NCBI RefSeq assembly: GCF_052425735.1
Contig: NC_135761.1
Coordinates: 44,144,001-44,208,000 of the forward strand
Direction of reading: 5' to 3'
Source: Oculina patagonica
Taxonomy: Eukaryota
Length of the DNA stretch: 64,000 bases
In this document: positions 1-54,720 of the stretch, in pieces
Numbering within the stretch: the first letter of the stretch is position 1
Layout: each line of letters begins with the position of its first letter
Position numbers and translations under genes: made by a program
Notes under the pieces: generated by a model
Seen by the model: the letters and a program-made list of their open reading frames with translations, nothing else
The model's database searches: none
What the model was told of the DNA's origin: nothing

Positions 1-1240
1 CTAATATGAAACTCGTTTCAAAAAGCAAGACGGTAAACTGCCCCCCAAAAATTATACCTCTAAAAATGCTGAAAAATGCCATTGTTAAATTTTAACCCGG
101 CCGGCGAAATGATCAATTTGTGTTGTTTTAATTTGCTCAGGAATTAACCTAAGCTGGCAATAAAACTACAACGCTGATTTGAAATAAAATATACAATAAT
201 GAAAGATTTCCGTATGGCGCCATATTTATTTTCTATACACACAACTATTTCTTTTTATACTGCAGTGTGTTGTATCTTTCACACATGAACGGCAATGATA
301 ATTATGAGTTACACGGAAATCTGTAATCTCAGTCCTGATTTTAAATATAAGGGCTCTGACGATCATTAAAAAATTATTTTGCACACAAGACATTTTATAT
401 GTATACTGTATATAACCTTGTTTAATGGTGATGTTTATTTTTGTGCTATTAAGAAAACTCACAAATTGAAACAATGCCTTCTGTATGACAGTTCAGAATA
501 TTTTTAATTTTAGCTTTACTTGCAGCTCTGCATATAAAAATGTAAGACTTCTAGTCTGCTGGTAAGTGTGTACATCTACTCTGAAAGTGTAACATAGATT
601 TTTACTTTAAGATCTTGTGTCAATATACAAATTCTTGTTACTATTAATTCCCTGTGCATTTCTTATAATAAGAGTTGAGAGAATTTGATAATTGTATCAC
701 ACTTCAAATTCTGATGACAACTTACAAATCCTCTTTGCTGGTCTTTATACATACCATATAATACAACAAAGTTTGAGAATTTTTTATGAAGACAGTTTGC
801 TCCTTGGTAAGCACTTTATAATTCTCATGTCCTTTTCTTTGTTATATGTCTTTTGATGTTACAAGTACAGGGTAGATTTTTAAGATCCGCGACACACTAG
901 GCGATTTTATTCACTGATCAAAGAAAATTTGATTGTTGTGGACACTGCTTGTTGCGGACACACTTGGCGATTTCTCTCGATGTGGCACTTCTGCCTTGTT
1001 TCCAGACTCCATCGAGTGGCATTTAAAAAATTGCGCAAAACAATGTTAGCAAACAAAATGCTGACTTAGCAGAAATATCTGCTAGCTGCTGCCATAATTT
1101 TGCAACTACTGTGAGACACTCCAGACTACTTGCCATTTCTTTATAGGCAGCATCTTTCTTCAGGCGATGACTGCATTCGCTTGACATACCTGATCGGTAC
1201 ACAATTTTGCTGGTCTTAAATTTCACGATTGAACACACTT

Positions 1241-1372
1241 AAACACACACTGAATTAAATTAACAATGAAAACATGTTTAGGATGTCCTGCATCGATCTT
1301 CAGTAACAAACAACAGTGGAAGATTGAAGCAGGACATCCGAAACATGTTTGTTAATTTTAATCTGTGTGTTT
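1241..1372. repeat. Inverted repeat made of two degenerate minimal hammerhead-ribozyme motifs (Penelope pLTR-like remnant)
   Basis: Arms ~1241-1303 and ~1317-1372. The left arm on - reads CTGAAGA-T-CGATG-CAGGA-CATCC-TAAA-CATGTT; the right arm on + reads TGGAAGA-T-TGAAG-CAGGA-CATCC-GAAA-CATGTT. Confidence 0.6.
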
Positions 1373-1384
1373 ATCTTGAAGATA

Positions 1385-1578: not shown

Positions 1579-10547
<8,969 letters not shown>

Positions 10548-17100: not shown

Positions 17101-20100
17101 TGAACGTATCTGTGATCTGATTAGAATGATTCTCAATATGAACAATTTTTCTTTTAACAATCAACATTATTTACAAATACACGGAACAGCCATGGGAACC
17201 CGCATGGCACCTTCATACGCGAACTTATTCATGGGTAAATTGGAACAAAACGCCATTGATAACACCGTAAACAAACCGCTCGTATGGTGGAGGTTTATTG
17301 ATGACGTTTTCATGATATGGACACACGGAGAAGAACTCCTCAAGAACTTCATAAGTTACTTAAACTCCATTCACCCGAGCATCAAATTCACCCATGAATA
17401 TTCGATTTCCTCACATCAGGCACTCCCTTTCCTGGATGTTCAAGTCCACCTTAGCAACAACCACATTCAAACAGATCTACATACCAAGCCCACCGACAAA
17501 CATCAATACCTTCTCAGAACCTCATGCCACCCAAACCACACGAAGGAAGCCATACCGTTCAGCCTGTTCCTCCGTATTCGCCGCATTTGCTCTACCGATG
17601 CTTTCTTTGACAAACGTAGTGGAGAACTCATCAAACACCTGATCAAACGTGGATACAGCCGCACTTCCCTACAGAGAGATGCAAATCGCGTTCGCGCCAT
17701 CCCACGTCACGCAACGCTCCAGCCCCAAGGACAGCAAACCACAAAGACAGACCGTACACCTTTTGTCATATCATTCAATCCTGCCCTACCCAAAATATCT
17801 TCTGTTATCAAGAAACACTTAAATATTCTCCAGTCCTCCGCCAACTGCAAAGAAGCTTTTCCTCATCCACCAGTTATCGCCTACAGACGTAACGCAAGTC
17901 TGCGTGATCTCCTTGTACATTCCGAGCTTACACATAAGAAGTTCTCCAAACAACAAGGCGCTGGAGTTCATAAATGCAACCACCCACGATGTCTCACTTG
18001 TTCATTTCTTCAAGAAGGCCAAACTAACTACACTTTCTTCAACACCAACGAGACACGCAAAATAACTGACAACATTTCTTGCCGCTCTAAAAACCTTATC
18101 TATCTAATCGATTGCAAAAAATGCCACCATCAATACATTGGGGAGACCAAACGTCAACTTAACGAACGCTTCGGACAACACCGCAGATCCATTCTCAACC
18201 ACCATAAACTTGATGACCCTACACCAGTATCTATTCATTTCAACCAACCCGGCCATTCCATAAACGACGTTCACCTCATCCCGCTTGAACTTATACGCAG
18301 CAAACGAGACTCAGTCAGGAAGGCTCGTGAAGCCCATTTAATTAACAAGGCAAAAACTTTACATCCTCTGGGAATTAACAGACGTGACGAAACACGTCAT
18401 TGACACTTGTTAGAACCAATCATTGTTTAGTATTTTATTTTAAATTTTTCTATTTGTAACGATCCTTTTATTTTTCTCATCATTTTGTTTCTCCGCCCAG
18501 CCCCTGTGGAAGATTTGTTTTGCAAACCGAAATATAGGGCAAAGTTTTTTCTACATATTCTAGTTTTTTTCTTTTTATCCACTTTGTTTATTTTTGACCG
18601 CTTTAGCCGTCAGGATCAGTTTGCCGTCTATATTTTCCGTTTTAACTTAGTTACTGATCCAGGTCTTCAATAGATCCGGCACCACTCATCGGTTTGTCGC
18701 TGTGATATTGCAGTATTTTATTATATAAGTCACTTAGGCAGGGTCGACTGCAAATGAAGCTGTTAAGCCATTTAATGTTTTAGCAATATGAACATATAAC
18801 TTATCTTAGTATGATAAATTGTTATTAGCGTAATTTTTTTTTTTAAATTTTATTCATTAGTAAATTTATTTGTAAATTTTTAGCTTTATCTAGGATAACA
18901 GCTTTTACATGGGAATTCAGTTTCCCCCTGCTGTTATCCTCCCACTTTTTTTTTATTATTATTATATATTTTATCTTTTTTGTTGTAAATATTTTTTGTA
19001 ATGTTGGGAAATCTAATAAAAAAAAAAATAAAAAAAATAAAAATGCTGAAGACCAAGAAGGGTTACAGTGGGAACAGGGGGGGGGGGGGGGGGTGATCAG
19101 ATGAAGAAACACGCTTTACCGGTTTGGTTTGCCTAAACACAGACTGTTTAAAGGTTGCTTGCATTGGTTAGAGAAAATGAAATTCTGCTATTTTAAGCTG
19201 ACTACTTCCTTCCTCCCCGTTCCACCCTAAAATACATTCATAGTTGATATACCAACTGCTTATAGTCGGGGAGCTGAGGCCGCAAACGAGTTACGACTAA
19301 GGGCCTGTTTACAAGCAGGTAGGGTAACCCTAGGTGCTAGGGTTACCCTAGCAAGAGGGTGAGAAGATAGCCCGGGTTTACAAGCAAAATTGGCAGGTAG
19401 GGTAACCCTACTTACCCGGGTCAACTTACACCGGTTACGCTTCAGTTAACCTTGTAAAATTTTGTCGTTAGAAACTGTTATTCGAAAATAATTCCGTTCC
19501 AGTGCAAAAATACGACAAATTGTGAATGAAAACGATGTTTCTTGGTCACAATTCGCTGTTCTTGTCGGTATTTTTAAACATATTTAGCCTTTTGGAGCCA
19601 AAATAAAGTTGTCTCGGGTAGGCGAGTAATCCCTAGCAGAGCGTTTACAAGGCGCTAGGGTTACCCTAGCAGCTAGGGTAACCCTAGCACTCAGCTAGGG
19701 TTACCCTAGCTGCTAGGGTAACCCTAGCGCCTTGTAAACACGTCGATGAAAAAAAGAAGAAATGTGGGAGCGCTAGGGTAACCCTAGGTGCTAGGGTAAC
19801 CCTATGTGCTAGGGTTACCCGCCTGCTTGTAAACAGGCCCTAAGCAACACAATGAACAGGATTTGTGAGCATTGTCGCCTGCATCGTTTGTTTACCCCAG
19901 CGTCAGAGACCACTTAGCTTGATAATTCTTACCAGGATTCTCCTTTATCAAAATGGCAGCCACTGCGACAATCGTAACGAACACGCTACAAAGAAGATCC
20001 ATACGAATCCCCAGCCAGCGATTACACGACACAACCATAAAGAAAGCTTGTGTGTTCTCGTCCTGGTACCTAAAAAGGAGTACTGTCATGAACATGACTT

Positions 20101-40309: not shown

Positions 40310-40731
40310 CCCGGGGGGGGGGGGGGGGTACTCCATATAACGGCCTATACGGGGAGGCTCCGCCCGAAAGGGGTACCTTTTTCAGGCTTCAGGTATATAA
40401 AAGGGTAGCGATTTCACAAGTTTAGGTATATGAAAGGGTATGAAAATCCGTCATTTAGGTTTTTTAAAAGGCCTGTAATTAAAATATTTCGAACAGACGC
40501 ACTTTATGGCTGTATTATTTTAATTTATTAAGCGCTACATAAAAATGAGAAGAAAACGTCCTGTTCTAAGGCTATGTCACGTCTTTTAGGTATATGAAAG
40601 GGGTACCTTTTTTCAGTAAAAGGTATACGAAAGGGGTACAATTTCTGTCAAAATGGTATATAAAAGGGTAAGGGGTAAGAGCTTGGGGCGGAGCCTCCCC
40701 GTATAAAACTTTTTTGAGTGCCCCCCCCGGG
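40310..40731. mobile_element. CCCGGG-terminated MITE with 8-bp TSD
   Basis: GAAGTCAA|CCCGGGGG...CCCCCGGG|GAAGTCAA; the paralogous empty site at ~45184 has a single GAAGTCAA. Confidence 0.9.
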
Positions 40732-41619
40732 GAAGTCAACAAGACATGCAGCTGTGATCCAGAATAATAATACAGGACTGTATTAACACAACTTACATGT
40801 TACTTTTGTGTGACCAACACAATCAATAAACAGTGTCGCTGAGTAATTTTACCCGTTCTTTACATTTTGTCTTGCCCTGCAAGCTTTACAGATTTGCTGT
40901 TTGTAATTTCCTTTTTTTCTTTAGCCATGGGCGGGAACCTCCTGGTCTAAAGCCTAATCCGTGTGTACGTACCGGGGCTGGCTGCGACCCCCAAAATTTC
41001 TCGGCTAGATGGATAACCATTTGCTTACTTATGGATGCTTCGCCGGCTCGCGCCGCTCCGCTATGAATTTTCACACGATAAATGGCGTAAAAGTGACCTC
41101 TGATGCTTGCTTGTCTTAGCCAGTGAGTTTCCTTATTTGACTAAATAACATAAGTAATTTCACTATATGTTCATTCGAACGACTACAAACTTCCAGTTTT
41201 CAAATATTCTATATCTGTATCAATGTCAAAGACTCCATCTCTGATTTTAATTGTGCTTGTATCTATGTTCTTATTTTCATGGCGGAAAACCGATGTGCGA
41301 GAAGTGTAGACTGCAGACCTGCAGACTTGCATGCAGACCGGTTAGCATGAATGATACTCCGGATAGTTTAAGATTATACGACTAACAACGCTTCAGTTTG
41401 CTTTGAATAGTAGACAAAGCAAAACGATATTCACTTGAAAGCAATTCCACATGTCCACAGCCTGCAGTTTACATTTGTTGCACACCGTGGCAGAGCAGGT
41501 TCCATTGCAAGTTAAAATCTCACCTTCCAGAAACAGCACAGAATCAACTGAGCGTGCTCCGTTTCTTTCTGTTCACATACACTCAAGACTTGCTGCAAAC
41601 TTATCAGTATTGTAGATAA

Positions 41620-41852
41620 ATGACACGAGAATGGGGCAAAGAAAAATTTTGAGTCCCCGACGGGAATCGAACCCATGGCCTCCCAGATACCGGTTGGGCG
41701 CTCTACCCAACTGGGCTACGAGAGACTCGTGGTAAGCTGGGCCATTTCCTAGGTACAAAGTTCTTCCAACCGGTATCTGGGAGGACATGGGTTCGATTCC
41801 CGTCGGGACTCAGAATTTGTCTTTGTCCCATGCTCGTCTCATTGTTGGAAAA
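41620..41852. mobile_element. Inverted pair of tRNA-derived SINE heads
   Basis: On -, A-box TAGCCCAGTTGG and B-box GGTTCGATTCCC; the inverted partial copy on + keeps the B-box. Confidence 0.8.
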
Positions 41853-42460: not shown

Positions 42461-44933
42461 TTAGTTGACTGGATCTGGAAGAACCATTAACATTTCAGTC
42501 TCTCGTTTAGAACTTTCCTTCCTAAAATACTTTTTGTTAGCGAACATGAAAAGATCACACAAGCCCTTCCTGTACTCTTTGTTTGTCATCCAGTAAATCA
42601 AAGGATTAACACACGAGTTAAACATTGCAAGTATTCCACCCGTATCGTGCAATGTGCTACCAATCTTTGTGATGTTAAACGGAGAGAGGATATAAATGGT
42701 TTGAGCCGGAAGCCAACACAATGTCAACGTAATTGACGTCACGGCACACATGCGTAATAGCGCTTTCTGTTGTGCTCTTTGTCGCTCACGGTAGCATCTA
42801 GCCATTGGCGATGTCTTGAACAGCAGTGTGATATGGCCAAACGAAGCCCAAGCAAGCAAACATGGGATATAAAATCCTATCAGACTGTATATAATTATCA
42901 TAGCTTGCGTACCCTTTTTTCCATACGGCGCTTCTACTTCCGAACATTTGTTTCCAGACAATTTCCATTCGAAAAACTTGTTTATCTGCAGAAGACAAGT
43001 GCAAACCCAAATAGCCAGGATGTAGAGAAAAAGTCTCTTGCGTGTGAAGTAGCGTTTGTACGTCATTGGTCGAAAAATACAATACCACCTATCAATAGCC
43101 AGGCACGTGACTTTCAAGATAGAGACTTTTCCCATTGTAAAGAGCGCGTATCTACTAATGAGGACACGGCAGAAGATTTCACCTGCTAAACCGCGAGGAA
43201 CTGGAAACGATGCAATGCTGATAACATAGCCAGGAGTAAGAGGAATGAAGATTCCTGTCCAGCATAAAAGCATTGGTTATTCTTACAGTTTTTTTTTAAT
43301 GACATCTGTTACGTTCTCATGAAAAACAACAACATACGGATAATAAGGGAATAAAATGATTTTTTGAGGGAATATTGTTTATTTGCGCCCGCGTAGTGTC
43401 ATTTGTGGCCCGAGCGCGAAGCGCAAGGGCCACAAATGACACTACAAGGGAGCAAATAAACAATATTCCCGAACAAAAGTCATTTTATTATCATTATTAT
43501 CAATAAACAAGGCCAAATAACATCCAGATAGGTAACACATTCAGTTTAATGAAGTTAGCATCATGATTTTCAATTCAAATAACACAAGTACTTCGTCGCA
43601 ATGAAAATTATACACGATGCTACTGAGGCTTATGTCTTATTGTGTAGTTGTAGTATAAAAGAGCTAGCTGCAGTGTCTCTGAAAATAATGAGCAATGGGT
43701 TGATTCATGGATAATAATACTTTACAAACTTACATTTTCCGATTGAACTTCGGCGTAAAATTCCTGCAACTGCCTTAGCAAAATTGGCTCGACCGGAGAT
43801 ACACAATTCAAGTGAATGATGTTTCGTTTCTCGCAAGACAACAAGGAGCTGCTCTCTTTGTCCCTTCGCCTTGTGAATTTGCCTCTAAATCCGACTTTTT
43901 GGCTGTATTTTGTCCCATTTACAACAAATAGACTTTTATTTTAATTTGATTTTTCCTACCGAACACAATTCGCTTGTCGAAAAACTGTTCGAGACTCTTG
44001 CTGTACGCGTACGCACCTGAATTGTTTTCCCACGTCAGCGACGCTGATTGGTTAAAGTTAATCGGATGATGAACAGAGAACCAATCAGCTGCAGGGCCGT
44101 TAATGCATTAACAGCCCGCTAGGAGTCATTTGCGGCCCGCAAAGCGTGTGTTTTCAATAGGGCGGTTTTCAATTTGGCCGCGTGTATTGATAATAATGTA
44201 ATTTTAACTGCAGTATGTTATGATAATGTTGTTTCACACCGTTTGATCGCTGAGGAAATTTCTCAAACGTTAAATTAATGTTTGTTTTGCAAGCATAAAT
44301 TTGACATTTGGCAAATAAAACACCAGTATCAATTACTTTGATTTGGCACACGGCAAAATCTAGAAATTTGTTCATGGAAACAAAGCTTTTAATCTTTTTT
44401 CCTTGTTTAAAATTACCGTGATGACAGCTATTCCGTGAAGTGTGAAAGAGAAAAAATGTGTCAAAGAGAAAATATCAATTGCATACAAAAAACCAAAACA
44501 ACAGGAATTCCACAATTTTGAATATATGATTTCTTTCAAGTTTGACCATTTGTTTTCTTCACGAATCATCTTTCTAGTAATGCTTGTGTTTTCCTACATA
44601 TACTACTGGCTTCTGTCGCTGTTAAGACCTACCCACTAGAATCATCAACGATTGCGTGATCTAGCCCTTAAATACCTTTTCCAATGATGTTTTATCTAGG
44701 TAAAATTAATATTGAGAGTCTCGTAGAATCGTATAAAGCTACAAACCTGTAAGTAGATCTGTGATTGCCAAAGAGAACAGAAGAATATTGTGTGGTCTTT
44801 TCAACATGGCAGGCTTTCTCACCATTATCACACAGAACAGAAAGTTCAGCAAAAACGACAAAGCTGCTATTACGCCAAACGTCGCCTCCCTAACATTGGC
44901 CTGGAAGCTCTTTTTCTTGCGTTGGTGAATCAT
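42461..44933 (-). CDS. Class A orphan GPCR copy 4 with replaced N-terminus; exons 44933-44747, 43254-42461
   Basis: Paralog of copies 3, 5 and 6. The METL.. start is missing and an in-frame ATG at 44933 comes from former upstream DNA; spliced length 981 nt. Confidence 0.75.
43343..44197 (-). mobile_element. Hairpin-ended non-autonomous element, Crypton-like, in the GPCR4 intron
   Basis: Absent from the paralogous introns. Hairpin 43339-43501; IR CATTATTATCAATA (43492) / TATTGATAATAATG (44185); the - strand encodes LLRQLQEFYAEVQSEN near 43735-43780. Confidence 0.7.
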
Positions 44934-45255
44934 GTGTGAAAATTGGAAGAAAGTTATTATGACATTTCGTCAAATGTTTTAGTAAACACGGTGACATCAG
45001 CTGTGCAAATATGTTCTAGCTAAAATGTCATATTCTTACTAGAGAGTCACGTTCAAAATACATTTACTTTAAACTGAACGGTGGTAACAAGACTCCAATT
45101 CAACAATATCAGTTAGCTTCTATTTTACTGGAGCAAATCTAATACACTTAAACATTAAGACACATCACAGCTTGTGAGAGCTGGAAGTCAACAAGATATG
45201 CAGCTGTGATCCAGAATGCTGTCAATATATGCTATGTTAACAAAACATACAGAAC

Positions 45256-45572
45256 TTTATACCATGCCATAGAAAATACAGCCAATCAGAATACAGGAAA
45301 GCCGTTGTATATTCGACGGTATTCAACCCAACCTTCCCATCGTGCGCTGCGATCTTATTCTCGATGAAATTTAGTAAGCCTTTTTTTCTATGGCATGGTA
45401 TAAAATAGTTACACAACACTTTCTCGTGGTATACTATGGAATATCCCACTTGTCACTTGTATTTTCTTCGTATACACACTCGCCTAAAGGCTCGTGTGTA
45501 TACCGAGAAAATACAAGTGACTCGTGGGATATTCCATAGTATACCACTCGAAAGCGTTGCATAACTAGTATG
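45256..45572 (+). mobile_element. Hairpin-ended miniature element with Crypton-like architecture
   Basis: 21-bp IR at 45256-45276 / 45384-45404, then a ~160-bp hairpin at 45406-45567; absent from the paralogous site at ~40780. Confidence 0.75.
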
Positions 45573-46413
45573 TATTAACACAACTTACATGTTACTTTTG
45601 TGTGACCAACACAATCAATAAACAGTGTCGCTGAGTAATTTTACCCGTTTTCTACATTTTGTCTTGCCCTGCAAGCTTTACATATTTGCTGTTTGTAATT
45701 TCCTTTTTTTTTTCTTTAGTCACGGGCGGGAAACCTCCTGGTCTAAGGCCTAATCCGTGTGTACGTACGGGGCTGGCGGCGACCCCCAAAATTTCTCGGC
45801 TAGATGGATAACCATTTGCTTACTTATGGATGCTCCGCCGGCTCGCGCCGCTCCGCTATGAATTTTCACACGATAAATGGCGTAAAAGTGATCCCTGATG
45901 CTTGCTTGTCTTAGCCAGTGAGTTTCCTTATTTGACTAAATAACATAAGTAATCTCACTATTTGTTCATTCGAACGACTACAAACTTCCAATTTTCAAGT
46001 ATTCTATATCTGTATCAATGTCAAAGACTCCATCTCTGATTGTAATTGTGCTTGTGTCTGTGTTTTTTTTTTTCATGGTGAAAAACCGATGTGCGAGAAG
46101 TGTAGACTGCAGACCTGCAGACTTGCATGCAGACCGGTTAGCATGAATGATACTCCGGATAGTTTAAGACTATACGACTAACAACGCTTCAGTTTGCTTT
46201 GAATAGTAGACAAAGCAAAACGATATTCACTTGAAAGCAATTCCACATGTCCACAGCCTGCAGTTTACATTTGTTGCACACCGTGGCAGAGCAGGTTCCA
46301 TTGCAAGTTAAAATCTCACCTTCCAGAAACAGCACAGAATCAACTCGGCGCGTGCTCCGTTACTTTCTGTTCACATACACTCAAGACTTGCTGCAAACTT
46401 ATAAGTATTGTAG

Positions 46414-46652
46414 ATGAATTTTTTCAACAATGACACCAGCATGGGACAAAGAAAAATTTTGAGTCCCCGACGGGAATCGAACCCATGGCCTCCCAGATCC
46501 CGGTTGGGCGCTCTACCCAACTGGGCTACGAGAGACTCGTGGTAAGCTGGGCCATTTCCTGGGTACAAAGTTCTTCCAACCGGTGTCTGGGAGGTAATGG
46601 GTTCGATTCCCGTCGGGACTCAGAATTTGTCTTTGTCCCATGCTCGTCTCAT
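46414..46652. mobile_element. Inverted pair of tRNA-derived SINE heads (duplicate of 41620-41852)
   Basis: Near-identical sequence in the duplicated unit. Confidence 0.8.
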
Positions 46653-47226
46653 TGTTGAAAAAATTCATCTTCATTATTCGTCGCCGAGCTTCAAATTTAC
46701 CAGCTTGATTAATTACAACTTATAAGTACGTTTAAGATGACCGAGAAAATAGTTCTCAAGTATAGTTTTACATAATCACTCCGCACCAAACGGCACTGTA
46801 AACTGTGTTTCCATGGTAGACGCATGCTGTGTCAACTGAGTCTATGTGCATTGTAGATTCCTCAACCTGATCTTAAATGAAAGCTTGTAAAACTGGCAGC
46901 AATAGGATATTACACACAATGTTCTTTCATGATTACCAGAATAGAGATTGAGGAAAACAGGCACTTATTTACAGTAAAAAAAAAGAAAATTGATATTTTT
47001 TATAATGAACACCTCAATGGAATGATTGTGTAATAGTGTTCAAATTTAGATCGAAAGGAATGTTATAAGCTGTGTTAAACTCGTTATTTATGTTGAGCGA
47101 CTAAGCTAATTTGACTGTAGATAAGCTGTGAAACAATGAACTATTGTGAATGAATTATCAAATGTATGAGGTAATGTTTGAGAAACACGGGAACACTGAA
47201 ACCGTTCAACATAGCGTCAACAAAGA

Positions 47227-49267
47227 TTAGTTGACTGCATCTGGAAGAACCACTAACGAATACATTTCAGTCTCTCGTTTAGAACTTTCTTTCCTAAAAT
47301 ACTTTTTGTTAGCGAACATAAAAAGCTCACACAAGCCCTTCCTGTACTCTTTGTTTGTCATCCAGTAAATCAAAGGATTAACACACGAGTTAAACATTGC
47401 AAGTATTCCACCCGTATCGTGCAATGTACTGCCAATCTTGGTGATGTTAAACGGAGAGAGGATATAAATGGTTTGAGCCGGAAGCCAACATAATGTCAAC
47501 GTAATTGACGTCACGGCACACATGCGTAATAGCGCTTTCTGTTGTGCTCTTTGCCGCCCACCGTAGCATCTAGCCATTGGCGATGTCTTGAACAGCAGTG
47601 TGATATGGCCAAACGAAGCCCAAGCAAGCAAACATGGGATATAAAATCCTATCAGACTGTAGATAATTATCATAGCTTGAGTACCATTTTCTCCATATGG
47701 AGCATTTACTTTAGAACATTTACTTCCTGTCAATTTCGACTCGAAAAACTTGTTAATCTGCAGAATACAAGTGCAGACCCAAATCGCCAGGATGTAAAGA
47801 ACAAGAGTCTTTCGGGTGAAGTAGCGTTTGTACGTCATTGGTCGAAAAATACAATACCACCTATCAATGGCCAGACACGTGACCTTCCAAATGGAGACCT
47901 TTCCCATTGTGAAGAGTGCGTATCTACTACTGAGGACACGGCAGAAGATTTCACCTGCTAAACCGCGAGGAATTGGAAACAATGCAATGCTGATAACATA
48001 GCCAGGGGTAAGAGGAATGAAGATTCCTGTCGAGCATAAAAGCATTGGTTATTCTTACGGTTTATTAAAAAAAAGTTTATGTAAATTATTTTTTTAATGT
48101 TTGTTTTGCAAGCATAAATTTAACATTTGGCAAATAAAACACCAATATCAATTACTATGATTTGGCACACGGCAAAATCTAGAAATTTGTTCATGGAAAC
48201 AAAGCTTTTAATCTTTTTTCCTTGTTTAAAATTACCGTGATGACAGCTATTCCGTGAAGTGTGAAAGAGAGAAAATGTGTCAAAGAGAAAATATCAATTG
48301 CATACAAAAAACCAAAACAACAGGAATTCCACAATTTTGAATATATGATTTCTTTCAAGTTTGACCATTTGTTTTCTTCACGAATCATCTTTCTAGTTAT
48401 GCTTGTGTTTTCCTACATACTACTGGCTTCTGTGCTGTTAGGACCTACCGTAATGATTCGATTTAGCGCCCTCCTTCAAATAAGCGCCCCCTTCTGAATA
48501 AACGCCCCCCTTCGAATGTGTTTTTGTAAATAAGCGCCCCTATTCCAATAAGCGCCCCCATTCTCATTAACGCCCCCGTTCCTATAAGCACCCCTATTCT
48601 AATAAGTGCCACTATCGTGGATAACTGCCCATACTGAAGTCATTGACGTCAACTAGATAAACTCCTGACCGTTCACCGTACAGTTCATGTATATATTTAC
48701 TGCTAAAATGAACAATTATTTTAAAAGTAACTGAACTTCAAACAATTTCTAACTGTAACAGTCTCTGTTATTGTTAGATACATTTGGTTGTTTCTCTAGA
48801 AATTAAATAAACGCCCTGTCCCGAATAAGCGCCCTGTCTCGAATAAGCTCCCTCCCTCGAGGTGCCAAAAGTAAATAAGCGCCCCGGGCGCTAAATCGAA
48901 TCATTACGGTACCCACTAGAATCATCAACGATTGCGTGATCTAGCTCTTAAATACCTTTTCTAATGATGTTTTATCTTGGTAAAATTAATATTGAGAGTC
49001 TCGTAGAATCGTATAAAGCTACAAACCTGTAAGTAGATCTGTGATTGCCAAAGAAAACAGAAGGATATTGTGTGGTCTTTTCAACATGGCAGGCTTTCTC
49101 ATCATTATCACACAAAACAGAAAGTTCAGCAAAAACGAAAAAGCTGCTATTACGCCAAACGTCGCCTCCCTAACATTGGCCTGAAAGCTCTGATCTTCTA
49201 TGGCTGGCGTGGGCAGTTCTTTACCTGAATCATTTTGCAATCGTGAAGATGTACTCAAGGTTTCCAT
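47227..49267 (-). CDS. Class A orphan GPCR copy 5; exons 49267-49027, 48026-47227
   Basis: Same motifs as copy 3; spliced length 1041 nt, in frame. Confidence 0.9.
48448..48909. mobile_element. MITE with TA TSD in the GPCR5 intron
   Basis: TA|CCGTAATGATTCGATTTAGCGCCC ... GGGCGCTAAATCGAATCATTACGG|TA; empty site GACCTACCCACTAG at ~44626. Confidence 0.93.
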
Positions 49268-50097
49268 TTTGAATAATATTGTTTGAGTTTTTCTATATAT
49301 TACTTAAATTAGGTTCCCAACCATGAAAAACCTAATATTTCAAACTAATGCCTTATAGGTTCAAGAGGAATATTGGTTAAGAAATGATACGTTTTGACTA
49401 AAGAAGTAGGGACATTTGAATAATATAAGAAGTAGGCTTTTATGTTTGCAAAGGGTGACAAGCTCTGTACAAGACTTGTCAATCATTATTTCAGTTCTCT
49501 TTCTTTGTTATCGTAATCGTTGTAAAATTTGACATTAACCAGTCGAAACTTAGTTCACGCACTGCTTACTAATTATGCCTTATTTTTATATCCCAGTAAA
49601 TAAAGAGGGAGCAAAATAAAGCGAATTTATATGGAATATTAATGCCAATTTATGTGTAATATAAATTAAAGTTAATGCCACAACCATGAATGTGAGATCA
49701 GAGAAGTAAAAAGAGCACCCCAGTCAAATATACAGATCTGTCACGCAATAGGCTGCAAGACTAACACTCTTGCATTACATTCAAAGGTCAAAGTCGCCTC
49801 TGCACCAGTATGTTGTGCAATTTCGGGCTGGCCAATCATATTGCCCCTATTCTATCATGTCAATCAAGACCATGCGGTTTCATCTAGACATCATTAATTT
49901 TACTTCAAATTCTCTGAGCTCTAGAATGGTTCTGACAATAATTCCCACCCACCCAACCCTCTTTGGTTTTCTTCTAGCATAGTACTTGTAGACATCTAGG
50001 CAATGTTAAAATTCTACACACAAATACTGACATGTAGAGGGTTGTCCTTTATTATGATTATGATTATTATTATTTTCACACATTAGCCAGAGCCAAT

Positions 50098-50600
50098 AGA
50101 CTAAAGCAAAAAGTCTGCTTATATAGACACTATTATAATTGTTACCTTTCGCATGCTACTCAAGTTTCAGTAGAACTAATGGACTTAAGCAGCATGCCTG
50201 CTTATAGAGACATTGTGTTTATATTGTTACCATTTTGTATGCTAACTCAGGCTTAGAGCTTATGGACTGAAGCAGCATGTCTGCTTATAGAGACATTGGT
50301 TTTATATTGTTACCATTTTGTATGCTAACTCAGGCTTAGAGCTTATGGACTGAAGCAGCATGTCTGCTTATAGAGATATTGGTTTTATATTGTTACCATT
50401 TTGTATGCTAACTCAGGCTTAGAGCTTATGGACTGAAGCAGCATGTCTGCTTATAGAGACATTGGTTTTATATTGTTACCATTTTGTATGCTAACTCAGG
50501 CTTAAAGCTTATGGACTGAAGCAGCATGTCTGCTTATTAAGATGTTACTATTGTTAACATTTTCTATGCCAACTCAAGCTTGCAGCTGTTGGCCTTGAGC
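50098..50600. repeat. 83-bp tandem repeat (4-6 copies)
   Basis: TATGGACTGAAGCAGC recurs at 50261, 50344, 50427 and 50510. Confidence 0.95.
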
Positions 50601-50871
50601 AATATCTCTTCTTCTCGAGACATTGATATAACTGTTTCATTAAGTGTCAAGCTGGCACATACTAACTCAACCATTCTGTTATTCGTTTACTGACTTTTAT
50701 TTATGATCTTCTTCGATAGGTTTAGAACATCTTACCTAAGTGTTGTTTTTTGTTAAAGTAAATAAACCACGGGAAGGGGTGAAGTGCTCCATACAATTCG
50801 CCCTTTTGCCCCATAGCCTCACAGGGTCAGCTTTCCCTGTAGAGTGGGCCCTCAGTGTTGCTGTTGTTGGC

Positions 50872-51275
50872 TGTTGTGTTTGTTCCCAAGGGTCCTGGAG
50901 ATTAGGACCCCAGTTTATTGGGAACCAGGGAATGTGGTTGTGTTTGTTCCCAAGGGTCTTAGGACCCCAGTTTCTTGGGAACCAGGGAATGTGGTTGCGT
51001 TTGTTCCCAAGGGTCTTAGGACCCCAGTTGCTTGGGAACTGTTCCCAAGGGTCTTAGGACCCCAGTTGCTTGGGAACCAGGGAATGTGGTTGTGTTTCTT
51101 CCCAAGGGTCTTAGGACCCCAGTTGCTTGGGAACCAGAAATGTGGTTGTGTTTGTTCCCAAGGGTCTTTGGACCCCAGTTGCTTGGGAACCAAGGAGTGT
51201 TGTTGTGTTTGTTCCCAAGGGTCTTAGGACCCCAGTTGCTTGGGAACCAGGGAATGTTGTTGTGTTTGTTCCCAA
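50872..51275. repeat. 57-bp minisatellite with internal palindromes (~7 copies)
   Basis: Unit TGTTTGTTCCCAAGGGTCTTAGGACCCCAGTTGCTTGGGAACCAGGGAATGTGGTTG. Confidence 0.95.
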
Positions 51276-52014
51276 CCTCTCGTTGCCAACCAACTTACCT
51301 GTAATACTCTGCATGATTCCTATTGGCAACTCGAGCACTTCACCCCTTACCCCTTTTCTCCCACTGAACTTGTTGTCTTGTTTTCATGTCATGGGTTGGG
51401 AGCATTAAAAGTCCGTTAAATTTCTGTTTTGTTAAAGCTGTGCTTCAACATAGATATATCTATAAAGCGAAAAAAAATCAAACTATTGACATTAAAAAAC
51501 GCACGAACAGTGTCATTAACACCCGTATGTAAATAACTAGCTAATATTTTTCCGTCAGGGCCAGTTATATTTTATTCATTTGCTTTTTTTATTAGTAAAA
51601 ACGTAGTTTCCAGCAGTTTTCTGTCGAAGTATAACGCAATTCTGTAATTCGAAAAAAAGATGTTTTCTTGCATTGGTGAATCATGTATGAAAACCTGAAA
51701 GAAAGTTATTATGACATTTCGTCAAATGTTTTAGTAAACACGGTGACATCAGCTGTGCAAATATATTCTAGCTAGAATTTCATATTCTAACTAGAGAGTC
51801 ACGTTTAACATACATTTACTTCAAACTGAACGGTGGTAACAAGACTCCAATTCAACAATATCAGTTAGCTTATATTTCACTGGAGCAAATCTAAAACACT
51901 TAAACATTTAGTTAAGATACATCACAGCATATGGGAACAGGAAGTCAACACGATATACGGCTGTGAACCAGAATGCCGTCAATATATGCTATGTTAACAA
52001 AAATACAGAGCTTT

Positions 52015-53367
52015 ATTATATGGCAAAGCAAATCCGAGCGTTCTGATTGGTTCTTTCTTGGTCGGGATTTCGCCATACGGACCGTTTTCATGAAAACGGT
52101 CCAAGCCGTGTATTTTTTCGAAAGCTGACAAACTCAATTTTTAACTATACCTGCGAAGTCAAAACGTGTACTCTCATTCTTCGCAAAGAAACTACCGAAC
52201 AGATTGATATTTCACAGAGCTTAGAACGTGGACGAAGAAAACGAACATTCACCAAGCGAATTTCAAGCGAATTATCTTAAAGTTTGGGAAACCTCTGATG
52301 TGGAAACGGACACAGGCATCACCGAAAGGCAGGAGGCCATATAGAAGATTTTATAAACGAACGGAAAACTATAAACACAAATAAGAAGACGGCTACTGAA
52401 ATGAAAGCTCTTCCCCGCTACATTGAAGGTAAGTGAAGGTAATAGTATGACAAATGAAAGAATTGATAGCCTACCTTCTTCCGAGCTTGACCAACTTCCC
52501 GTCCAAATGAGTCCAAATTTTTTTACGAAGCGAATTTTTTATTAACACACGAAGCAAAAAAAGGAGAAGAGTACGAGCAAGCAGCAATTTCCAGTTTTCA
52601 GCAAAGCATACAGTGATACCTGAGAAGAAATATCCATTCAACATACTCAACGACAATGAGTTTGAAAAATCGAGAAGAGTACTAGCTGCGAAGTGCCAGT
52701 CACTAGTTCACAAGAAAGAAGCCGCAAGCCGCTCAGGCGATTAATGAAGACGAAGAAGTCGAAGACGCTCTTTTTGAAGCGGGAGAATTAAGCGACTCCA
52801 AACCAGTGGGCACTTCATAGAACTGTCTTGTGCTTTTTTTTAGAAATTTACCCTTACGACACTTTGGTTTACGAGCCAGAAACGAAAGCCGAAAGTTACG
52901 CTGAAGAGCTGAGACGTTCAACTTCAACGGAGAATGATGGCCAAGAAACCTCAGTTTGGTTAGCCGAGCGGCCTTTTGGCTTTCAATGTTGCCTGTTTCA
53001 GTTTCGTCATCAGAACTTTCCCGAAATTAAGAATAATATAATCCGCTTGGTGAATATTCGTCTTCCTCGTCACGATCAATAAATTTGTTTTCAAACTCGT
53101 GGTAGCTTGTTCTTTCTGAGTTGCTCACTTTACGGAGGAAGCCCTTTGAATGCAAGTGACCGGAAGTGCTTTATAACAGAAAAATAAACAAGCATGGCTC
53201 GAGTGCCATATAATCAACTACTTACTAACCTTGCTTCCCCGAGCCGTACTGGGGAATATTGGCCCTCGGTCGTTTTGTACGGACCTCGCTACGCTCGGTC
53301 CGTACTGCCACGACCTCGGGGCAATATTCCCCAGTACGGCCCTCGCGCACGGTTAGTAAGAGGTTAA
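52015..53367 (+). mobile_element. Decayed, internally deleted Crypton-type (DUF3504 tyrosine recombinase) element
   Basis: Broken frames at 52341-52910 give IEDFINERKTINTNKKT, IDSLPSSELDQL, GEEYEQAAISSFQQSIQ*YL, NILNDNEFEKSRRVLAAK, EDALFEAGEL and HFGLRARNESRKL. IR ATTATATGGCA (52015) / TGCCATATAAT (53204); hairpin 53221-53360. Confidence 0.8.
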
Positions 53368-54459: not shown

Positions 54460-54720
54460 AATGAATTTTTTTCAACAATGACACGAGCATGGGACAAAAA
54501 AAAAATATGGAGTCCCCCGACGGTAATCGAACCCGTGGCCTCCCAGATAACGGTTGGGCGCTATAACCAAGTGAGCTACGAGAGACTCGTGTTAAGCTGG
54601 GCCATTTACTTGGTACAAAGTTCTTCCAACCGGTATCTGGGAGGACATGGGTTCGATTCCCGTCGGGGACTCAGAATTTTTCTTTGTCCCATGCTCGTCT
54701 CATTGTTGGAAAAATTATCT
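54460..54720. mobile_element. Inverted pair of tRNA-derived SINE heads (third duplicate)
   Basis: Homologous to the copies at 41620 and 46414. Confidence 0.8.

Follow-up and report, generated by a model that had tools for sequence, protein, structure and literature searches.

The 64,000-nt stretch of the Oculina patagonica genome analyzed here (NC_135761.1; hereafter the window, to whose positions all coordinates refer and from which the N run at 9889–10104 was excluded) contains three elements, named E1, E2, and E3, that are probably non-autonomous members of an anthozoan group of Crypton-type (i.e., tyrosine-recombinase) DNA transposons, and for which we infer movement as a folded strand. 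Their common layout is a 5′ terminal repeat (A, 14–27 nt) with an inverted copy (A′) lying directly before a terminal hairpin of 140–170 nt. The predicted order of a full element, as it occurs in relatives elsewhere, is A, one to four CCAAT boxes, a recombinase gene of ca. 550 amino acids (aa), A′, and a 140–170 nt hairpin that ends the element. The domains of this recombinase are, in order, a QRICH1-type N-domain, DUF3504, and an integrase C-terminus.

E1 is an 853-bp non-autonomous element on the minus strand (43343–44195, with the 5′ end at 44195 and the 3′ hairpin end at 43343), as placed from empty paralogous sites and contig depth, and its boundaries are ambiguous by a 5-nt microhomology (ATTAT). 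Its A repeat (44172–44198; CATTATTATCAATACACGCGGCCAAAT on the minus strand) is 27 nt long and 89% complementary to A′ (43492–43518, minus strand; located with a repeat finder), which adjoins the hairpin (43350–43489, minus strand; arms at 43360–43417 and 43421–43478). Since E1 is inverted, the plus strand is the bottom strand of the element, and on this strand the hairpin has the apex GCGCGAAGCGC, with G.A, A.G, and A.A mismatches and a GAA loop. A motif scan located a pair of inverted CCAAT boxes (GCTGATTGGTT ... AACCAATCAGC) at 44043–44089.

E2 is a 315-bp miniature element on the plus strand, belonging to a very high-copy family and delimited by pile-ups of contig ends and an empty-site contig (45256–45570); in the window copy, the TGTAT that follows at 45571–45575 is target DNA. 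Its A repeat (TTTATACCATGCCATAGAAAA, 45256–45276) is 21 nt long (26 nt in the family consensus) and 100% complementary to A′ (45384–45404, from the repeat finder). Between them lies a CCAATCAG box (45282–45289) that is nearly invariant among E2 copies, and the hairpin (45405–45569) has 87-nt arms that are 84% complementary, with tandem G.A pairs on the minus strand. All of these features lie in the plus orientation.

E3, also on the plus strand, is a 1354-bp internally deleted derivative of a recombinase-carrying element (52014–53367), as judged from an empty site at ca. 40790 and from its ends and 5′ gene part, which match positions 5649–9207 of a coral contig (L121, described below). Its A repeat (TTTATTATATGGCA, 52012–52025, plus strand) is 14 nt long, with the first two T being flanking DNA, and pairs at 13/14 positions (93%) with A′ (TGCCATATAATCAA, 53204–53217, plus strand; repeat finder). 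An inverted CCAAT box (CTGATTGG, 52043–52050, plus strand) lies ca. 185 nt upstream of the ATG of a broken tyrosine-recombinase gene remnant (52228–52910, plus strand), which retains a QRICH1-type N-terminal domain and the start of DUF3504 and is interrupted by frameshifts and stops. An inverted partial duplicate of the gene start (52970–53071, minus strand) shares a 32-nt core inverted repeat with 52231–52262. The terminal hairpin (53213–53367, plus strand, or to 53368 according to the repeat finder) is 92% identical to positions 8900–9067 of contig L122, and its bottom-strand apex reads GGACC-GA-GC-GTA-GC-GA-GGTCC.

This layout bears out what the initial annotation had proposed, i.e., that three mutually unrelated elements each carry a terminal sequence with an inverted copy abutting a long terminal hairpin. 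The elements indeed have no BLAST-detectable similarity to each other or to the remaining window. The similarity noted among the hairpin centers is also real, as the top-strand CTCG...CTCG corresponds to CGAG...CGAG on the bottom strand, where tandem G.A pairs flank a short GC stem with its loop. Likewise, the motif reported near the opposite end (CCAATCAG/CTGATTGG) is present at 44044 and 44081 in E1, 45282 in E2, and 52043 in E3, so that four of its seven occurrences in the window lie within element stretches totaling 2.5 kb.

The link between such ends and a tyrosine recombinase runs through E3. The DUF3504-like remnant previously read in this element received no direct Pfam support (ten stop-free open reading frame [ORF] pieces of E1 and E3 gave no relevant match even at E = 10), whereas its homologues did uphold it. 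Specifically, searching 1.84 billion protein representatives with a 77-aa piece of E3 retrieved 33 short coral ORFs, the better-preserved coral ORFs P0005 and P0002 carry the QRICH1 domain PF25561, P0005 aligned by tblastn to 52341–52838 (E = 2e-20), and a DUF3504-bearing ORF piece of L121 matched 52620–52901 (E = 2e-10). Moreover, an E3-type 5′ end contains the start of both P0032 and P0020, and P0032 extends into the arm of the hairpin, indicating that the gene fragment is part of the family rather than a single capture event. The short similar peptide also claimed for E1 (43725–43940, minus strand) is not supported, since neither tblastn with recombinase queries (E < 0.1) nor a search of 5.8 billion proteins returned any match to it.

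A longer E3-family member of 3.56 kb was found at 5649–9207 of L121 (GCA_942486035.1, Porites-related), a contig that encodes P0016 and another protein named KIAA1958-like of Porites lutea. This member starts with TATTATATGGCA, a 5′ terminus common to four independent E3-type loci, followed by a CTGATTGG box and an ATG 241 nt in. Its ORF pieces match PF25561 QRICH1 (41.4 bits), PF12012 DUF3504 (40.4 bits), and PF00589 Phage_integrase (29.1 bits), all above the Pfam curated cut-offs, with the integrase matches of these pieces and of the intact ORFs described next being weak to borderline. In its 3′ part, TGCCATATAATAAA is a perfect 14/14 complement of the 5′ end and is followed by the hairpin. 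The member carries one frameshift and an interruption of ca. 1.35 kb.

In an independent test, the intact 522-aa recombinase ORF of L121 served as query, and relatives were picked only by length, copy number, and contig size. The coral contigs L128, L129, and L130, as well as L131/L132 (from the sea anemone Actinostola and a metagenome contig), each proved to contain an intact recombinase ORF of 543–556 aa. In these loci, an A repeat of 22–26 nt lies ca. 275 nt upstream of the ATG, an inverted copy lies directly before a downstream hairpin, and the CCAAT(CA) boxes comprise one in inverted and two or three in direct orientation. The hairpins beside these intact genes measure 143–157 nt where complete; in L128, A and A′ match over 12 nt only and the hairpin is shorter and looks truncated, while in L130 the match is 24/24. 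The variable positions of A in the three coral families (CACCC, CATTC, and CATCC) are each matched in A′, and this covariation between sister families argues that the complementarity is maintained. Altogether, a hairpin is present at five of the six recombinase genes examined. The earlier proposal of one mobilization system tied to a DUF3504-type recombinase is thus supported by the L121 member and by the intact genes sharing its layout, and the relatives examined as a check on it (the L121 member and the intact genes of L128, L129, L130, and L131/L132) show a tyrosine recombinase in this layout, with no RepHel seen.

In gene-carrying relatives, the CCAAT boxes are situated 80–240 nt upstream of the ATG in either orientation, which fits promoter boxes. 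They would most simply be promoter elements of this gene that the miniature copies have retained, and a cis role in transposition is also possible.

The insertion sites of all three elements could be read from the window itself. Since its 37–59 kb region is a tandem array of paralogous units of ca. 4.8 kb, natural empty-site controls are available, and relative to these E1, E2, and E3 are insertions, none of them with a target duplication. Empty E1 sites are located at ca. 38585 (unit 1) and ca. 57060 (unit 5). A single site in unit 1 (40780–40800, plus strand; ACAGGAC-TGTAT-TAACAC) is the unoccupied counterpart for both other elements, with E2 present there in unit 2 and E3 in unit 3, at insertion points 2 nt apart. 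Moreover, contigs of all four coral runs contain an empty E2 site in which 45245 is joined to 45571 with ATACAGAAC between them. Each empty site holds one TAT-containing stretch (ATTAT for E1, TGTAT/T-TAT for E2, and TATTA for E3), which is found at both ends in the filled sites. Owing to 1–5 nt of microhomology, T^T is a possible reading of each of the three sites. The placements 43343–44195, 45256–45570, and 52014–53367 fit all three elements as well as other family copies, and with these each element starts with TAT (TTTAT for E2) and is followed by TAT beyond its 3′ end. The E3 family likewise starts with TAT and has TAT in the 3′ flank of five out of seven copies. Insertion is thus just 5′ of TAT, without target duplication and with a short TAT-type repeat at each end, as in Cryptons.

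Further detail on the target came from E2 copies. Most have a terminal A or T in the 5′ flank, and the flanks of 24 copies show TA at 7–8 nt on the upstream side of the insertion and T(G/A)TAT on the downstream side. A preference of E2 for the loop edge of small hairpins in the target could not be shown, as stem matches in these 24 copies averaged 2.33/5 vs. 2.21 for shuffled partners (p = 0.23). As a separate observation, the occurrence of E2 and E3, from different families, 2 nt apart at a homologous site in two units looks like a target hot spot, the empty site (ATACA-GAAC-TGTAT) being a small perfect palindrome. In contig L053, an E2 copy (1213–1388) starts exactly at the 3′ end of an element with an E3/E1-type hairpin (891–1217; ...GGTTAGTAAGAGGTA|TTTATACC...), a head-to-tail abutment that fits insertion 5′ of a T-TAT supplied by the element's own 5′ end.

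The terminal hairpins fold far better than expected from their composition. As single-stranded DNA, they reach –60.9 kcal/mol for E1 (z = –16.5), –61.9 for E2 (z = –14.6), and –55.7 for E3 (z = –10.5), and none of 200 shuffles per hairpin folded as well. When arm was aligned to arm in eight hairpins (three from the window and five from elements that carry a recombinase), mismatches on the gene strand proved to be pyrimidine–pyrimidine in 55 cases (mostly tandem TC/CT) vs. purine–purine in six (binomial p = 5e-11, a value that overstates independence because the eight hairpins form about four related groups). E1, E2, and E3 each show this bias individually. On the opposite strand, the mismatches become tandem G.A/A.G pairs in a 5′-CGAG-3′ context, and six of the eight hairpins have GAA, GTA, or GCA as their apical loop on the bottom strand. 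Sheared tandem G.A pairs (5′-CGAG-3′) and GNA triloops of the d(GCGAAGC) type are unusually stable in folded single strands. The hairpin should therefore fold well on one DNA strand only, antisense to the gene, and this strand-specific G.A/GNA code supports a role for the hairpin as a folded single strand. In a nested, reversed element of L130, the code is on the other contig strand, consistent with it following each element's own orientation.

Other analyses of the hairpins were less telling. A gapped alignment of 22 E2 copies was uninformative with RNAalifold, and an Rfam search of the hairpins gave only sub-threshold microRNA-precursor-like matches, for E1 and E2. When own-arm was compared to chimeric-arm folding, own arms were best in the window E2, L034, and L051, and 10% of chimeras beat those of L038; subfamily-specific arm pairing is thus seen in young E2 copies only. 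GAA-triloop apexes also recur in many otherwise unrelated coral palindromes, and in L005 (5211–5000, minus strand) an E2 copy is split by another long palindrome with the apex GGCCGAAGGCC.

E1 and E2 are multi-copy mobile families in four coral organisms, with E2 at very high copy. The 2.4-kb stretch with both elements was found in public runs of coral metagenomes and of these four organisms, in which contig depth over 43250–45650 amounted to 1e5–1e6 for E2, ca. 1e4 for E1, and ca. 1e2 or less for the flanks. For E1, the depth of ca. 1e4 was measured over 43331–44221 vs. 0–290 in the flanks (four coral runs). In the same four runs, matching contigs have their ends clustered exactly at 45256 and at 45571–45576 (45571/45575/45576). 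An exact scan with 19 nt of the E2 terminal repeat located sharp-ended copies on at least 120 coral metagenome contigs, and with this family the non-autonomous members do reach down to 0.3 kb, as had been anticipated. The E2 consensus starts with TTTATACCATGCCATAGAAAATACAG-CCAATCAG and has an A/A′ pair of 26 nt, and the family 3′ end is ...GCATAACTAGTA followed by a T(G/A)TAT that is less conserved than the body.

Within the E2 family, the first ca. 95 nt are best conserved, L108 and L113 combine them with quite dissimilar hairpins, and the hairpin of L053 has an E3-like outer stem and an E1-like apex. Such a shared A/A′ module with different hairpins, together with the mixed L053 hairpin, indicates that the families are modular and related, and not independent inventions. 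A search of 16 contigs for E2-type 5′ ends followed by a gene met with truncations and nested repeats only, and a copy similar to E3 in L079 has a rearranged, uninformative 5′ end. A miniature element of ca. 325 bp in L130 (5665–5990; A = TTATAATATAGCA, with a CCAATCAG box and a coded hairpin) is reversed relative to the intact recombinase gene and begins 33 nt past its stop codon, and these elements thus evidently insert into one another.

A mechanism that could connect these features starts with the strand antisense to the gene turning single-stranded, upon which the hairpin would fold, with the GNA triloop nucleating and the sheared tandem G.A pairs stabilizing the structure. A would then pair with A′, and both stems would bring the element ends together at one junction, where the recombinase would cut and rejoin that strand next to TAT to yield a circle. 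The circle could later integrate at another TAT, and replication would complete the second strand. For E2, the predicted circle junction is ...GCATAACTAGTA + TAT-type core + ACCATGCC... In such a circle, the end-to-end junction would lie opposite the internal A′–hairpin boundary, and the joined E2 ends minus GTATGTA are the exact complement of this boundary, a geometry that supports the proposed folded-strand mechanism. That animal Cryptons might transpose via a folded single strand, with the G.A/GNA hairpin and the A:A′ stem presenting both ends to the recombinase, is a proposal drawn by analogy, to which we give slightly less than an even chance. If true, this would be a eukaryotic counterpart of integron attC and CTX-phage recombination, and the folded single-strand route would explain how recombinase-less 0.3-kb copies reach thousands.

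Several points weigh against the assignment to Cryptons that move as folded strands, besides the relatedness among the eight hairpins. Neither a circular or single-stranded intermediate nor any excision event or enzyme activity was observed, and the contig-level reads are without circle junctions. No gene-carrying relative of E1 or E2 was demonstrated, and the putative ties of these two to the recombinase are limited to the architecture in common, the code of the hairpin, the CCAAT motif, and TAT as target. The putative catalytic motifs NHSMRK, GH, and DDY near the C-terminus of the recombinase align with HxxR, H, and Y of archaeal XerA weakly (E = 0.58), and beyond this the catalytic residues are visible in the Pfam integrase matches only. 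Furthermore, the recombinase gene of L133 (43% identical) has CCAAT boxes and no nearby hairpin, and a hairpin is also lacking near the neighboring recombinase gene of L121 (1538–3106). Just downstream of the latter intact gene lies an ORF that reads as the N-terminal part of a Harbinger-type transposase (846–1373, minus strand), and this hairpin-less element may have lost its 3′ end to a Harbinger-type insertion. Finally, A/A′ plus hairpin is the textbook layout of Helitron2/Helentron elements (PMC3627910, PMC4067079), whose rolling-circle enzyme might act in trans.

This last point leads to the best-surviving rival, i.e., that E1, E2, and E3 are non-autonomous Helitron2/Helentron elements (HINEs), of which a Rep/helicase nicks the ends, the 3′ hairpin is the rolling-circle terminator, and the recombinase is captured cargo. 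Helitron2 elements have a 5′ asymmetric terminal inverted repeat (ATIR) 0–2 nt from the end and a 3′ ATIR immediately before the terminal hairpin; they start with T, favor T-rich targets, and do not duplicate them (PMC3627910, PMC4067079). The window elements have the defining ATIR and 3′ hairpin form, a T run follows about a third of the E2 copies, and capture of gene fragments is known for Helitrons (PMC4344730). However, in all five long members examined, a recombinase gene occupies the corresponding position in one and the same orientation and has a CCAAT promoter region of its own (four with intact ORFs), while none of the five has a Rep or helicase; nor was one recognizable on reading the long ORFs (at least 200 aa) of 536 kb of coral contigs beyond the window. 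The hairpins, at 140–170 nt, also exceed the 20–60 nt of described Helitron2/HINE, and the same short repeat at each end matching one target copy is a Crypton signature (PMC3212892). Helentron/HINE was in fact the starting hypothesis and was dropped since the long relatives encode a recombinase, and we now regard it as unlikely.

A second rival keeps the Crypton-type assignment and lets the hairpin work as double-stranded DNA or RNA instead, as a recombinase-binding palindrome, a signal for the 3′ end of transcripts, or the precursor of small RNAs. The usual substrates of tyrosine recombinases are duplex sites that have inverted arms (PMC3212892), the location just 3′ of the gene suits a terminator, and both the sub-threshold Rfam matches of the E1 and E2 hairpins and the absence of an observed single-stranded intermediate are in keeping with it. 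Nevertheless, a duplex binding site leaves the 55 vs. 6 one-strand purine–purine bias unexplained, in a sense transcript the mismatches would be destabilizing C.U/U.C pairs, and the GNA triloop and tandem G.A pairs are known stabilizers of folded single strands. On balance, this rival appears marginally less probable still than the preceding one.

A chance composite, in which a MITE (a transposable element of the miniature inverted-repeat type) with terminal inverted repeats stands beside an independent foldback repeat, both moved by cut-and-paste DDE transposases, is highly improbable despite the richness of coral DNA in long palindromes (11 in the window, 136 when the 536 kb of contigs are included) and the frequency of nested or adjacent insertions (L079, L053, L130), because the E2 A...A′ part and hairpin travel as one unit with shared outer boundaries, no target duplication surrounds either part, the same order recurs in more than eight unrelated families and around intact recombinase genes, and, at odds with cut-and-paste MITEs, the 3′ terminus is a hairpin arm and not the inverse of the 5′ end.

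Some other features of the window were noted alongside. A tRNA match (Rfam, 33.1 bits vs. gathering 29) at 46466–46532 on the minus strand lies inside a palindromic repeat (46406–46676) with paralogues at 41619–41843 and 54467–54714; these repeats of 225–285 bp, in three tandem units, may be a tRNA-derived element. Another repeat, at 19300–19850, is bounded by terminal inverted repeats GGGCCTGTTTACAAGC, encloses a palindrome made up of CTAGGGTAACCCTAG units, and resembles an ordinary MITE of the terminal-inverted-repeat type, unlike the A...A′ plus hairpin layout. In unit 1, an insertion at 40310–40700 breaks the paralogous sequence, starts with a run of ca. 18 G, and has complementary ends (GGGGAGGCTCCGCCC ... 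GGGGCGGAGCCTCCCC). Units 2 and 3 of the array are spaced more widely because of two intervening tandem arrays, of 83-bp units (50088–50585) and of ca. 57-bp units (50874–51304).

Among known systems, the closest by gene content are the Cryptons (CryptonA/DUF3504 lineage; Goodwin 2003; Kojima and Jurka 2011, PMC3212892; Glomhopper, PMC13465315), with which the elements share long members encoding a DUF3504 tyrosine recombinase, outer termini that are not mutual inverted repeats, the absence of true target duplication, and short end repeats matching a single target copy. Described Cryptons have 4–6 bp direct repeats and otherwise featureless ends (PMC3212892, PMC13465315), and our elements differ from them in the A...A′ pair, the 140–170 nt hairpin with its strand-specific G.A/GNA code, the CCAAT module, and the abundant 0.3-kb miniatures. 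Full-text literature searches returned no mention of a hairpin or palindrome in the Crypton literature (including PMC3212892 and PMC13465315) and no description of the A...A′ plus hairpin layout; the coral CMITE paper (PMC2872659) proved unrelated, as it deals with piggyBac-type MITEs. Crypton movement is not understood and has no known recombinase substrate. With a defined cis-acting layout (A, A′, and a strand-selecting hairpin) that is conserved at intact recombinase genes in both stony corals and a sea anemone, the mechanism becomes accessible to direct tests.

Similar to Helitron2/Helentron, HINE, and DINE-1 elements (PMC3627910, PMC4067079), those described here have asymmetric terminal inverted repeats of which the 3′ copy immediately precedes a hairpin, no target duplication, a starting T, T-rich targets, and abundant miniatures. 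For Helitron2, a 5′ hairpin is described as well. Unlike them, the autonomous forms here encode a tyrosine recombinase and not a Rep-helicase(-endonuclease), the hairpin has three to seven times the length and carries a mismatch code, and a short repeat at both ends matches the target. By their ends the elements are Helitron2/HINE-like, by their genes they are Cryptons. Very abundant coral miniature repeats are hereby assigned to a transposase family, where their ends alone would suggest Helitron2/HINE.

With IS200/IS605 ("peel and paste") and IS91, the elements have in common subterminal hairpins, no target duplication, and a short fixed target, and the single-stranded intermediates of those systems are what is proposed here; those systems differ in using HUH nucleases, which were not found here, and in having short hairpins at both ends. 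Finally, integron attC and CTX-phage attP(+) (PMC8946536, PMC3053210) likewise combine an imperfect palindrome, mismatches that favor one strand, and association with a tyrosine recombinase, and they share a circle in recombination and a single-strand exchange completed by replication, the latter two being proposed only for the elements here. Those sites are bacterial, 60–140 nt long, and marked by extrahelical bases and not G.A pairs, and there is no homology, making this an analogy of mechanism and not membership. If confirmed, folded-DNA recombination by tyrosine recombinases would extend from bacteria to animals.

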